Assembly (NCBI GenBank): GCA_946965045.2
Contig: OX337228.1
Location: forward strand, 5,518,001-5,582,000
Direction: 5' to 3'
DNA from: Epithemia pelagica
Taxonomy: Eukaryota; Protista; Bacillariophyta
Length of the DNA: 64,000 nucleotides
Made by a program: the position numbers and the translations under genes. Positions 22,441 to 29,229 of this stretch are shown here, in pieces. The notes beneath the pieces were generated by a model. It made no database searches, was not told the origin of the DNA, and worked only from the letters and a program-made list of their open reading frames with translations. Each line of letters begins with the position of its first letter. The first letter of the stretch is position 1.

Positions 22441-23923
22441 ATGAGTTCAGATGATTTAGAAGGCGATGATATCTGGGGTGATTCGGGTGGATCCGCCGAG
22501 CTGGGAGGAGGTGGTGCCGCCGCGGCGGGTGCCAGTGAAGGCGAAAGCAAGCAACCAGACGATGGCGATGATCCATTGGAGGATGAGGAAACGAGGCATA
22601 TGACGATATCCGAATTACGCCAACGCATTCATTTATTGAACAATGATATTCGTGTCATGAAGTCAGATGTTCAACGCATCACTCATGAAAGTCGAGGGCA
22701 ACGTGAACGCATCAAGGAAAATCAAGAAAAGGTCAAAGTGAACAAGCAATTGCCATACTTGGTCGCGAACGTGGTCGAAGTGTTGGAACCTGATGCAGAG
22801 GATGGTACGTAGTCCCAATGGAGCGTTTGCTTTGAGGTTTTCGAGACAAGTGACTTATTCTGGTTCTATTCCTGGATTTTTGTCTTAAATAGGTTTGGAA
22901 GAAGAAGAGGGGGGCGATGCCACGGATGCTGTGGCAAAAACGCGGTCGGCGGTTGTTCGAACTAGTACGCGCCAAACGATTTTCCTTCCAATTCCAGGTT
23001 TGGTGGACCCAGATGAGCTGCGTCCGTCAGATCTTGTGGGTACGAACAAGGATTCCTATCTAATCCTCGAAAAGTTGCCAGAAGAATTTGACAGTCGTGT
23101 GCAAGCAATGGAAGTAGATGAAAGACCCACGGAAGAATATTCTGACATTGGTGGAGCTGACCAGCAAATCCAAGAATTGATTGAAGCTGTGGTCCTTCCC
23201 ATGACTCATAAAGATATGTTCGAGACCATCGGAATACGGCCACCCAAAGGTGTTCTGTTGCATGGACCACCAGGAACAGGAAAGACTCTGCTGGCCCGTG
23301 CCTGTGCCAATCAAACCAATGCAATCTTTTTGAAGCTGGCTGGGCCTCAGCTAGTCCAAATGTTTATTGGTGATGGAGCGAAACTTATACGCGATGCGTT
23401 TGAATTGGCAAAAGCGAAGATCAAGCAAGGCCTGTCAACGGGTGCTATTCTGTTCATTGATGAAATTGACGCTATCGGAACAAAGCGCTTTGGTGGTGAT
23501 CAATCAGGTGATCGCGAAGTACAACGTACCATGTTGGAGTTACTGAGTCAGCTGGATGGCTTTAGTAGCAATGAAATGATCAAAGTCATTGCTGCTACAA
23601 ATCGACCAGATGTGTTGGATCCGGCGCTTTTGCGTTCTGGTCGTCTTGATCGAAAAATCGAACTTCCTCATCCAAATGAAGATGCTAGAGCCAAGATTTT
23701 ACAGATTCATTCACGAAAAATGAACGTGAGCCCTGAGGTTGTCTTTGAGGAACTCGCACGTTCATGCGAAGATTTCAATGGTGCTCAGCTAAAGGCGGTT
23801 TGTGTGGAAGCTGGAATGCTTGCCTTGCGGAGAGAATCCTCTACCATTATGCATGAAGATTTTGTAGAAGCCATCACAGTTGTTGCTGCCAAGAAGAAAG
23901 GAAGTCTGGATTATTTTGCTTAG
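22441..23923 (+). CDS. RPT5: 26S proteasome AAA-ATPase subunit RPT5 (PSMC3)
   Basis: Exons 22441-22804 and 22893-23923 (intron 22805-22892). Motifs: [54 protein letters not shown]. Confidence 0.97.
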
Positions 23924-24124
23924 CCGAAATAGAAGGAACTCTGTAAGACATCTAATAGAATGCGTCGAAAGAAATACAATGGATGATCACATCCAGCAAT
24001 TCGGTTCCATGCGTGACATTCAGTGGACCTAGTTTCCCATCGCTTGAAATAAGCATCATCATGACCACTTCATAGTGTAGATATAGGAAACTTTGTATAC
24101 CTTAAATAAACACCACCTACATTT

Positions 24125-25334
24125 TTACTCCACCATGCAGATCATTTCGTTGAATCGGTCTACTTCCGTGGAAGATCCGATGCAAAGAGCAGTACGTTGG
24201 TCGACGGAGTTGATTTGAACATCCAAAATCGATCCACCAGTCACACCATCAGAAGTCTTGCCTCCTGCCTTTTCAACAAGAAGTCCGAAAGGAGCAGCTT
24301 CAAACGCCAGTCGGAGTTTGGCAGGGCTTCCTTCGGAGGTGGGGTTGGAGAAGACACCTTGTTCCTTTGTGAACTGTTGGTACACATCAGGGACAAGACC
24401 TCCAGAGTATCGGAGAGTGTAACGGTTCTCCATGAAGTGGTCAATGAGCTTCTTGTATCCAGGCAAGTCTTGGGCGGCACGCAAGTTGGCAGGGGCAAAG
24501 ATTTTGCAGTCAGGGCTGATGGAAATCTTGTGGCGAGAGCAGATCCAAGGTTCCCAGGTACCATCGGGAAGTTGGCAACCCTCAGGAGTGCAGCCGTAGC
24601 TGAATTCGTACGTTCCGTCGTCCAAGGCAACGAGAACAGTTGTACGAGGACCATACAAAGCAACCAAGGAGGTAACTTGGTCACGGCCAGTGGCTCCAAT
24701 CAAACCAGTGCTCTTGGGCCAAACACCAATCATGGTACCAACAGCCCAGTTATTGTCGACAATGGACGATCCATCCAAAGGATCCCAGCAGATAGTGAAC
24801 TCTCCGTCACCACCTTCGTCGACGTCACGGACAACAGGGTCTTCTTCGGAGGCTCCCTCGCGAATGACAGAAGACTTCTTCACCGAGTCCCAGATCAAGT
24901 TGTCGGCAATCACCTGTATATCGAAAAGAGTAAAATCACTATACAATGAGTCCATGGTCAACATTTCAGTTGTACTGTTCGTCCACTACAGACTTGTTCG
25001 CACTCACATCAACAGAAAGCTGGGCATCACCGAAATCGTTCATACTTCCTTCCACAGTGACAAGGGCTGTGCGAAGGGCCTCAGTGATTTCAGCGCACAC
25101 ATCAAGCATGTCCTTGATCACGGCGCGGACCTTGGGGTCGCTGCACTTTTGCTCAAGGACGGCGTCAAGGCTCTCATAGGAATCCTTTTTCTCCGTCTTT
25201 GTGTAGAAAGACGTGGACGAGGCACCAAATTCACCAAAAAGCTTGGTGGTGGAGGCCTGGCTTTTCAAGAAAGCAGGAGTGCTGAAAGCAGCAACTGCGT
25301 CGGCAAGGAGGAAGAGAGATGTGGCGACCTTCAT
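24125..25334 (-). CDS. SBP: Sedoheptulose-1,7-bisphosphatase-like enzyme with bipartite plastid presequence
   Basis: Exons 25334-25008 and 24913-24125 (intron 24914-25007), 371 aa. SBPase-type motifs: NDFGDAQLSVDVIAD, DPLDGSSIVDNN, TGRDQV..YGPRTT, YTLRYSGGLVPDV, AKLRLAFEAAP. Presequence MKVATSLFLLADAVAA-FSTPAFLKSQASTTKLF. Confidence 0.88.
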
Positions 25335-25740
25335 TGTTGGGGAGAAGAATGAACTGTGTGTCGAATCTGCCAGAGGTGATTCGCAAAAGTTTTCGTCTCG
25401 TGGACTCTGGGTAGCACGTCACACATTTGACATACGTATGCACGGGACTGCGTTGAGTAACCTTATTTTTCGGCCGACGTCGATCCGCTCACGATTATGG
25501 CACATCGTACGGACCATGACGACGATGTTAACACTCGGACCACAGACGACGATAATCCAAGGGAAAGGTTACAATCGTTTGCAAAAGCTCATACATCATC
25601 GATCGACTTAGAATGCTTCAACAACGAAAACAACTCAACGTATAGATAATCTGACCACCCCTAGCTACGGTAGCTAGTGATGATAAAAGTTGTAGATTAC
25701 GAATGCTATTTCACTGAAAAATACTAGGTAGGTAGGAATC

Positions 25741-27231
25741 TTAGTTGCCAGCAGCGGCATAAGCGTCAATAACTTCTTGGACATCGTTCTTCGATCCCAT
25801 GACGACAGGAATCCTTTGGTGAACAATCTTAGGCTTGATTTCCATGACACGTTCGGTACCAGTGGTGGACAAACCGCCAGCTTGTTCCATAATGAAGGAC
25901 ATGGGGGCACCTTCGTACAAAAGACGAAGCTTGCCATTGGGGTTCTTGGTATCACCGGGGTATCCAAAGACACCTCCGTACAACAAGGTACGGTGGACGT
26001 CTCCCACCATGGATCCAATGTAGCGACTGGAGAATTTCTTTCCGCTCTTTCCCGTTCCTTCACGCCACTTCATGACGGTATCACGCATTGGTGCGTCCCA
26101 CATTTCCAAGTTGGCTTCATTGAAGGAGTAGATGCCAGAATTTTCCGGGATTTCCACTCTTGGCTTTGAAAGAACAAACTCACCAATCGATTCATCCAAA
26201 GTGAAGATGTACACACCGTTTCCGAGGGTCAAGGCCAAGAATGTGGAGGAGGAATAGAGGCAGTAGGCGGCAGCGACAAGGTTTGTTCCGGGTTGAAGAG
26301 TGTTGGCAAGGCACTGGGCTTCTTGTTGAGTGCATTCATCGTCAATGCAATCAGGGTCAACTTCGCATCTTTCGTCGTGTTCATAGACGCCAATAATAGT
26401 TCCGGTGGGGATACCGGCATCGACATTGGACGATCCATCCAAGGCTATACAAAAGATGAAACAACCAAAACGTGTGAGGATGTTGCTCACATGCAGCTTA
26501 CCAAAGTTTTCAGCATGAAACGAGTCGTAAAAGCCAGATCGCTCTATTGGACAATGACAAAGAACAACTTACGCTGCAACACAAGAACACAATGAGTGAG
26601 ATGTCTGCTGGCAGCAAAGTTGGTCGAGAGAAGTGGAAACACCAGGAAATAAATAAATCAAACGGAAGCAGAGGAAACTTACATCGAATACTGCAACATA
26701 TTTGCCACTGTCGTCAATGATTACTTCTCGGTCGTCATCCTCCTCCAAAAGTGACACAGGCGCATCTTCTTCTTCGGAGGCCAGTACTCCCAAACGGCCA
26801 GTGAAACGAAGGGCACGCTTCAAGAGATCGTTCGTGATGACATCAAGCTTTTTCTGGTCTTCACCTTGGACATTGACCTCGCCTTGGTATCCAAGAGTCT
26901 CACTGGAGGGGAGCTGGGAACGCTTGACCAGGTTCGAGATGGCTTTGCAGGCCGTATCAATGGCTCCAAAGAGAGTTGTAAGCTCCTTGAGTTCAGGGTT
27001 GAGCATGGTGACTTCATTCATGAAGCGAGTCAATGTAACTCCAGTGGTGTCGCACACTTCGTCAAAGACGGGTGCCTTTGTTTTGGTTTGAATTCCAGAG
27101 GGTGGTGCTTCGACCGACGAAAACATGACACTGGATGTGCGAGCCGGTGTCTGGGCTCCTCCACCCACAACGAAAGCATCGGCAACCGTGGACGCAAGGG
27201 CGAATACTACGGCAACAGCACTAAACTTCAT
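25741..27231 (-). CDS. FBP: Plastid fructose-1,6-bisphosphatase, copy A (contains a 1-nt exon)
   Basis: Exons 27231-26683, 26573 (1 nt) and 26444-25741, 417 aa. Motifs: [47 protein letters not shown]. Signal cleavage at ADA-FVV. Confidence 0.93.
26573..26573 (-). other. Single-nucleotide exon (C) of FBPase copy A
   Basis: The minus strand reads TTGCAG|C|GTAAGT. The flanking introns are 26574-26682 and 26445-26572. The C is required to restore the frame of D-P-L-D-G. Confidence 0.8.
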
Positions 27232-27682
27232 GGTTTCGGTTTGTCTCACGAACACAAAAGGTTGGAAAAGAGACCTGATATAGTATGACGATGAAAGCAA
27301 TCGAATGAATACGGATGCAGGCGTTATTTTTTCTGACATGTTACGAGAATCGGTTCAAAAATTTAAATTCAGGGGGCGTGTTAGATCAATGACGTGTGTG
27401 CGAAAAGGCACGTTGGTCGGAACCAACATTCTTGCAAAAGAGGTGAAATTTTGTGAATCTGCGCCCCACCGTACGACGATACTCCGCTTTACTTACTGTT
27501 ACTGCATACATAGGTTAGTGGGGCAGAGCCTTAAATTTTCTTGCATGAGATGACACGACGACGGAGTCTGTCGCACGACAAAATCCGTCGTGCCACACAC
27601 CAAAGATACAATAGAGCAATTTGCATTCGCAAGTTTGTCTGGTCTATAAGTTGGAAAAAGGTGCAGTTGGAAACAAACAACC
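27232..27682. promoter_or_regulatory. Putative bidirectional promoter between the two FBPase genes
   Basis: 451 bp separate the divergent ATGs at 27231 (-) and 27683 (+). The interval contains a TGACGT motif at 27390. Confidence 0.55.
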
Positions 27683-29229
27683 ATGAAGATTGTGCAACTT
27701 CTCTCTCTTGTCGTCGCCCCAGTGGCTGGCTTTTCGCCGCTTACTGGACCTGCCCACCGTACTGCTTCGTCTTTGGGAATTGCCACCAACTCGGCGCCGG
27801 TGGAACCCAAGACGAAGGCCCCTGTCTTCGACGAAGTCTGTGAAACCACGGGCGTCACCCTGAAACGCTTCATGACCGAAGTCGCCATGCTCAACCCTGA
27901 AATCACAGAATTGACCACCCTCTTTGGTGCGATTGACACTGCCTGCAAGGCCATTGCCAAGTAAGTTCGTCCCTCCCCTGTCGGTTCTCGGTTGCCGGTT
28001 GCCGGTTGCCTTGTGCAGTTCATGTCAAAGTCACTCATTAACACAACCATTGCTTTCTTTTTGGAACAGCCTGGTCCGTCGGTCGCAACTTCCATCGAGT
28101 GAAACCCTTGGACTCGAAGGAGAAGTGAATATTCAAGGTGAAGACCAAAAGAAGTTGGACGTGATCACCAACGACATTTTGAAGAGAGCCCTTCGCTTCA
28201 CTGGACGATTGGGAGTGTTGGCCTCTGAGGAAGAGGACACCCCTGTCGATCTCATGGCCAACCAACAACCTTCTGTCATCATTGATGAGGGAGAGAAATA
28301 TGTCGCTGTCTTTGATGTAAGTCAGTCAAAAGCACGAATGACGTGCTGTCGGTTTGATCACTAACTGTCGTCCTACTTCACTGTTGTTTCTCGACTTCGA
28401 ATCTTTTGTGTTATTCCTACTTTGGTTTTCCCTGCACTTTTGGAAATAGCGTAAGTTCCCCAAGCAGCTGATTTCTATGAATCGTGGATCGTGTACTCAC
28501 TAAATTTTTCTGGACGTTTGTCAAACAGCCTTGGACGGATCTTCGAACGTTGACGCTGGTATTCCCACTGGTACCATTGTTGGAATCTATGAACATGACG
28601 AAGAATGTGCAGTTGACCCCGACTGTGTTGGAGACGAATGCACCGAACAAGAAGCACAGTGCCTTGCCAACACTCTTCAACCTGGAACCAACTTGGTTGC
28701 TGCCGCCTACTGCCTCTATTCCTCTTCCACCTTCCTCGTCCTCACTCTTGGAGCTGGAACATATGGATTCACTTTGGACGACAACCTTGGAGAGTTTGTC
28801 TTGAGTCACCCCAATATTCAGATCCCAGAGACTTCCTCCATCATGTCTTTCAACGAGGCCAATACTGGAAACTGGGACGAACCCCTCCAAAAGGTTGTCA
28901 GTAACTGGAAGGCAGGAACTGGCGCCAGTGGCAAGAAATTCTCCAGCAGATACATTGGCTCCATGGTTGGAGATGTTCACCGTACCTTGTTGTACGGTGG
29001 TGTGTTTGGATACCCTGCCGATACCAAGAACACGAATGGAAAGCTTCGTCTCTTGTACGAGGGTGCACCCATGTCGTACATTGTGGAACAAGCAGGGGGA
29101 CTGTCAACGACTGGAACAAAGAGAGTAATGGAAATCTCCCCTGAAACCGTCCACCAACGTGTTCCCATTGTTATGGGCTCCAAGAACGATATTCAAGAAG
29201 TTATTGATTCTTACGCCGCCAGCAACTAG
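27683..29229 (+). CDS. FBP: Plastid fructose-1,6-bisphosphatase, copy B (contains a 1-nt exon)
   Basis: Exons 27683-27960, 28070-28316, 28450 (1 nt) and 28529-29229, 408 aa. It has the same catalytic motifs as copy A. Signal cleavage at VAG-FSP. Confidence 0.93.
28450..28450 (+). other. Single-nucleotide exon (C) of FBPase copy B
   Basis: The sequence reads AAATAG|C|GTAAGT. The flanking introns are 28317-28449 and 28451-28528. The C is required to restore the frame of D-P-L-D-G. Confidence 0.8.

Follow-up and report, generated by a model that had tools for sequence, protein, structure and literature searches.

A sedoheptulose-bisphosphatase gene with a predicted bipartite plastid-targeting presequence in the diatom Epithemia pelagica, an ordinary orthologue of a widespread diatom gene

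The window analysed here, a stretch of 64,000 nucleotides from Epithemia pelagica, contains a minus-strand gene for a sedoheptulose-bisphosphatase (SBPase; gene SBP) that fills positions 24125-25334 exactly, from stop codon to start codon. Exon 1 (25334-25008, minus strand) encompasses 109 codons beginning with the ATG at 25334, and is separated from exon 2 (24913-24125, minus strand), with 262 codons and the TAA at 24127-24125, by the sole intron of the gene (25007-24914, minus strand, 94 nt), which has GT..AG borders (GTGAGT..ACAG) and lies in phase 0 after QLSVD. The spliced product has 371 amino acids, with the catalytic core (DPLDGSS, YGPRTT, YTLRYSGGLVPDV and KLRLAFE) encoded by exon 2. 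All four motifs quoted by the initial annotation were found in this spliced protein, and FGDAQLSVD/VIAD, which bridges the exon junction, exists in the spliced form only. The splice 24913/25008 was observed in the metatranscriptome of a close relative with ~92-95% identity, in which RNA contigs break at 24913 and resume with the 13 letters of 25008-25020 and a second contig displays the reverse junction; in relatives, the intron is removed as predicted. An intron of 90-92 nt was also detected at the identical codon in Phaeodactylum tricornutum (92 nt), Fistulifera and Mayamaea. The ATG at 25334 is the earliest possible start 3' of an upstream in-frame stop, and the next in-frame methionine is residue 75, within the conserved N-terminal helices. 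The 5' end of the E. pelagica gene was placed from the open reading frame and the complete transcripts of relatives, because zero RNA contigs aligned to 25226-25689, which covers the 5' UTR and the first ~110 nt of the coding sequence. Such transcript-derived complete relatives, namely P0002 (92% identity) and P0003 from Entomoneis sp. CCMP467 (91%), start with a similar signal peptide (MK...). A single run, X6, that contains 98% of the window is probably the source DNA and offers no independent evidence. The public entry for the window gene, P0001 (24125-24964), is an exon-2-only ORF call whose ATG falls inside the intron. A scan for bacterial promoters and terminators was set aside as inapplicable to a eukaryote.

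The N-terminus of the encoded protein was assessed by our own rule-based check of hydropathy, the -3/-1 residues and the residue at +1. Codons 1-16 (25287-25334, minus strand) encode a predicted signal peptide composed of MK, the h-region VATSLFLL and the c-region ADAVAA, with V at -3, A at -1, the cleavage motif VAA/FSTP and a best 8-residue Kyte-Doolittle mean of 2.34; the shortness of the h-region and the Asp at position -5 count against this prediction. Codons 17-34 (25233-25286, minus strand) encode the transit-peptide-like stretch FSTPAFLKSQASTTKLFG, which has F at +1 and, among its 18 residues, lacks D and E and includes two K and seven S or T, giving a net positive charge. The remainder of exon 1 (25008-25232, minus strand) encodes the start of the mature enzyme, running from GEFGASSTSFYT to FGDAQLSVD. 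Residues 1 to ~35 represent an N-terminal extension, since homology to the solved SBPases begins only at window residue ~44 (Toxoplasma) or ~54 (Chlamydomonas). The three elements of a bipartite presequence were all observed, that is, a signal peptide, an F at +1 where F, W, Y or L is required, and an acid-poor, hydroxylated transit domain, so that the N-terminus is predicted to be a classic diatom bipartite plastid presequence of the ASAFAP type, and the signal peptide, aromatic +1 residue (VAA-FST) and acid-free transit peptide read from exon 1 by the initial annotation were recovered. With such an architecture, the 16-residue signal peptide would direct the precursor into the ER/chloroplast-ER lumen, cleavage at VAA/F would expose the Phe, the acid-free Ser/Thr-rich stretch would carry the protein across the inner plastid membranes, and the mature enzyme would begin near GEFGASS.

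SBPase is the Calvin-cycle enzyme that makes sedoheptulose-7-phosphate. The Pfam domains identified in exon 2, PF00316 (FBPase N, 2.4e-22) and PF18913 (FBPase_C, 4.3e-33), bear the name of fructose-bisphosphatase (FBPase), and NCBIfam, which cannot discriminate SBPase, returned only class 1 fructose-bisphosphatase models, all far below their cut-offs. Among all PDB sequences, the top four matches are solved SBPases, with 242-213 bits versus at most 85 bits for any FBPase: 4IR8 from Toxoplasma, the best solved-structure match (E 6.7e-71), two chains of 5IZ3 from Physcomitrella (E 1.2e-62) and 7B2O from Chlamydomonas (E 4.4e-62), with the best FBPase at E 4.8e-23. The catalytic and metal-binding motifs (SEED, DPLDGSS, YTLRY.GG and KLR..FE) are intact in a residue-by-residue alignment to the Toxoplasma SBPase. 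A search of 1.84 billion cluster representatives retrieved 209 clusters at E <= 1e-30, and among the best 10 of these 209 the only two with organism names are a plant chloroplast SBPase and a Cyclospora SBPase. A quick ML tree built from 107 rows grouped the window protein with SBPs of diatoms and bolidophytes in a starred clade, which is nested in a clade with the Cyclospora SBPase (support 99, starred) near the plant chloroplast SBPase clade, and the neighbouring FBPase of the window lies far from the window SBPase. The PDB scores and the tree placement agree that the motifs are of the SBPase rather than the FBPase type, as originally proposed, and no clustering with FBPases was seen; sedoheptulose-1,7-bisphosphate is the presumed preferred substrate.

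Green-lineage chloroplast SBPases (Chlamydomonas 7B2O, Physcomitrella 5IZ3 and those of plants) share the fold family and catalytic motifs with the window enzyme (E ~1e-62), and presumably its Calvin-cycle role, whereas they carry a simple transit peptide instead of a bipartite presequence and show only ~49% identity. Among the apicomplexan SBPases (Toxoplasma 4IR8 and Cyclospora), that of Cyclospora shares the same 99-support clade with the window protein, while residue 15 of the solved Toxoplasma chain aligns to window residue 44 and the chain has no counterpart of the first ~35 residues of the window protein. Unlike the green-lineage enzymes, which contain a redox-regulatory Cys pair, the window SBPase has V and S at these positions: C-AGTA-C, before the N.FGD motif of the Chlamydomonas SBPase, aligns to V-TVEG-S. 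The regulatory Cys pair that defines green-type thioredoxin regulation is therefore absent, consistent with a report that the diatom SBPase is not redox-regulated (PMC7378808), and because this pair is missing the enzyme is probably not light-activated by a green-type disulfide.

The gene belongs to a conserved FBPase-SBPase locus. A plastid-type FBPase gene (25741-27231, minus strand) lies upstream in the same orientation as SBP and encodes the presequence MKFSAVAVVFALASTVADA/F, and both of the adjacent plastid-type FBPase genes carry N-termini of the same presequence kind as the window SBPase. Two divergent plastid-type FBPase genes with SBP in tandem were observed in the window (22895-29100), in P. 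tricornutum (L001) and in Fistulifera (L008), the P. tricornutum cluster resembling the window in having one FBPase on one strand and the FBPase and SBP tandem on the other. The tandem of FBPase followed by SBPase is also present in P. tricornutum, Fistulifera, Mayamaea and N. inconspicua. A gene for a 26S proteasome AAA-ATPase lies downstream of SBP in the window, P. tricornutum and Fistulifera, and further genes, one of them a GTPase gene, separate SBP from the AAA-ATPase gene in the latter two. The window SBP is a positional orthologue of the SBP gene that, in other raphid pennates, follows a gene for a plastid FBPase on its 3' side.

The distribution of the presequence was surveyed in 225 near-full-length homologues from three similarity searches, among the matches listed; since the set was chosen by similarity it is biased, and its proportions are indicative only. 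A hydrophobic region followed by a small residue and an F/W/Y/L site was detected in 188 of the 225 rows, with 33 rows showing no signal peptide and 4 an unclear N-terminal class; the 33 include a few truncated N-termini or Arg/Ala-rich forms. Besides that of P. tricornutum, ~30 signal-less diatom SBPs exist. In a first survey with 99 positives, F occupied +1 in 85 and A occupied -1 in 90. Named carriers of the presequence comprise, as annotated proteins, those of Fistulifera solaris, Chaetoceros tenuissimus (GFH60658.1, annotated as sedoheptulose-bisphosphatase), Nitzschia inconspicua and Pseudo-nitzschia multiseries (JGI 323862), and further Entomoneis (sp. CCMP467), C. affinis, Licmophora, Amphora, Leptocylindrus, Coscinodiscus, the diatom endosymbiont of Durinskia and the bolidophyte Triparma, together with several MMETSP transcriptomes. 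No SBP of Thalassiosira pseudonana was found among the matches listed or in the cluster listings. The other diatom plastid-type SBPases are ~370 aa in length, share 85-92% identity with the window protein over the mature enzyme and have the same signal peptide, A/F site and short Ser/Thr-rich transit peptide; they differ from it only in the fast-evolving letters of the presequence, with the structure unchanged. Judged from these N-termini, a presequence of signal peptide plus aromatic residue is the rule for the retrieved diatom and bolidophyte SBPs, several of which are already annotated as sedoheptulose-bisphosphatase, and the window gene is an ordinary orthologue of a widespread, already annotated protein.

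The initial annotation had regarded a plastid SBPase as unusual among diatoms, and its account of the older literature was accurate. Kroth et al. 2008 described a single P. tricornutum SBP, without a plastid presequence, ~500 bp downstream of FBPC2 (PMC2173943), and the review of Obata 2013 extended the absence of a plastid SBPase to "diatom genomes" (PMC3901268). The view of no plastid SBPase does fit P. tricornutum, and the surprise arose because it was extrapolated from this species; that a plastid-targeted SBPase is unusual among diatoms is not supported, given the architecture shared by the 188 of 225 homologues and the listing of plastid-targeted SBPs in ochrophytes by Dorrell et al. 2017, whose analysis of such proteins from ochrophyte genomes judged them polyphyletic (PMC5462543). 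In later studies of Seminavis and Fragilariopsis, SBPase is simply listed among the Calvin-cycle enzymes. Our literature search retrieved no paper with an explicit statement that a plastid-targeted SBPase occurs in most diatoms; Dorrell 2017 comes closest.

The P. tricornutum SBP (protein 56467) shares 88% identity over exon 2 and the identical intron position with the window gene, but lacks a signal peptide, its model starting with MPEAASGK. Two in-frame TAA codons lie directly 5' of the annotated ATG, preceded by a short non-hydrophobic ORF, and two intron-less RNA-derived contigs, colinear with the genome, begin only ~90-96 nt upstream of this ATG. Mayamaea pseudoterrestris has a signal-less SBP directly 3' of FBPase, with a homologous exon 1 present. 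No missed upstream exon or start with signal-peptide coding potential was found in P. tricornutum or Mayamaea. The possibility that these two models lack a first exon, raised earlier for SBP models in general, thus found no support: the curated models are correct, because exon 1 and the identical intron are present, the upstream sequence has no signal-peptide coding potential and, in P. tricornutum, the transcripts agree. The suggestion holds only in a trivial form, for exon-2-only ORF calls such as the many database entries of 256-279 aa that represent exon 2 alone and stem from prokaryote-style gene finders on genomic contigs. As a separate observation, the 5' leader of the P. tricornutum gene (L001:5915-6000) contains a 24-codon in-frame upstream ORF, MPTFVRSNAVIHSHIIFEASIASV, whose closing TAA TAA stands six bases 5' of the annotated ATG. 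Both transcript contigs contain this ORF, which might be what remains of a lost presequence or might act as a regulatory uORF.

Signal-less SBPs (among them P0021, P0531, P0517, P0518-P0529, P0533-P0538, P0543 and P0083; loci L001, L006 and L007) were observed in P. tricornutum, Mayamaea, Cylindrotheca closterium and ~25 unnamed sequences, and the model P0546 of Nitzschia sp. Nitz4 is also divergent. An apparent status of P. tricornutum as the sole signal-less homologue proved to be an artefact of a pattern that demanded GASS/T, which proteins with GASCTS escaped, and of hit lists skewed towards plastid-type queries; the additional forms were recovered with a looser pattern and with a divergent signal-less SBP as the search query. 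When the mature domain was analysed in a careful ML tree, one clade (support 99/97, starred), nested among the signal-bearing SBPs of raphid pennates, took in 15 of 17 signal-less SBPs but not those of P. tricornutum and Mayamaea. The AU test did not reject a topology uniting every signal-less form (p = 0.33), and the data neither show nor reject a single origin. The Cylindrotheca SBP gene has no adjacent FBPase, while synteny favours positional orthology between the SBPs of P. tricornutum and Mayamaea and the signal-bearing genes in the window and in Fistulifera. Signal-less SBPs thus recur in raphid pennate diatoms, where by their N-termini they are presumably cytosolic, and plastid targeting of SBPase is not universal. 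On balance we lean towards a plastid SBPase with a signal being the general and ancestral diatom state. The published view that diatom plastids lack SBPase would then stem from model species in which the presequence was lost: P. tricornutum and Mayamaea would have lost it in situ, at the conserved FBPase-SBPase locus, and Cylindrotheca and its relatives, as a separate clade, at a locus where no FBPase is adjacent.

Two further forms were encountered among the homologues. Four SBPs (P0167, P0177, P0178 and P0539) possess Arg/Ala-rich N-termini that resemble a simple transit peptide and lack a signal peptide, and since they nest (support 97-98, starred) beside Triparma and three unnamed signal-bearing SBPs, there is a hint that this SBP type was transferred laterally between lineages whose plastid-import systems differ. 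P0320 (661 aa; five JGI transcript contigs, ~2.49 kb) is a tandem SBPase-SBPase fusion without a signal peptide, whose first half has degenerate catalytic motifs, with an insertion after DPLDG and KLPLCYAA replacing KLRLAFEA, and whose second half looks intact.

Taken with the locus and the relatives, the sequence makes it very probable that the window gene is a nuclear gene for a stromal, plastid-targeted SBPase, which would give E. pelagica a canonical Calvin cycle. Activity as an FBPase, or as a dual F/SBPase, in place of a dedicated SBPase function would be compatible with membership of the class 1 FBPase superfamily and with the below-cut-off NCBIfam matches to models named class 1 fructose-bisphosphatase; the bit score is, however, three times closer to solved SBPases than to any FBPase, the protein sits in the SBPase clade, and with two plastid-type FBPase genes adjoining, a third FBPase is not needed, which together render such an activity improbable. 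That the protein travels only along the ER/secretory route or stops in the periplastidal compartment appears very unlikely: only the signal-peptide part is strongly hydrophobic and the transit-like part is short, at 18 residues, but F at +1 with small -3/-1 residues is the stromal-import motif, the architecture is kept across the 188 homologues, the two adjacent FBPases bear the same kind of presequence, and SBPase has no known role in either compartment. A cytosolic enzyme as in P. tricornutum, with translation starting 3' of the presequence, would recall the signal-less SBPs of related diatoms; it is hardly credible for E. pelagica, where the next in-frame start would be the methionine inside the conserved helices, the ATG at 25334 is the first after the stop, and the complete transcripts P0002 and P0003 begin with the MK... 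signal peptide.

A dedicated plastid SBPase would equip E. pelagica with a canonical Calvin cycle, in line with what most diatom sequence data already imply. Reviews and metabolic models that generalise the missing plastid SBPase of P. tricornutum to diatoms as a whole should not be applied to E. pelagica, and the signal-less SBPs of several raphid pennates may mark a cytosolic role of SBPase in those lineages.
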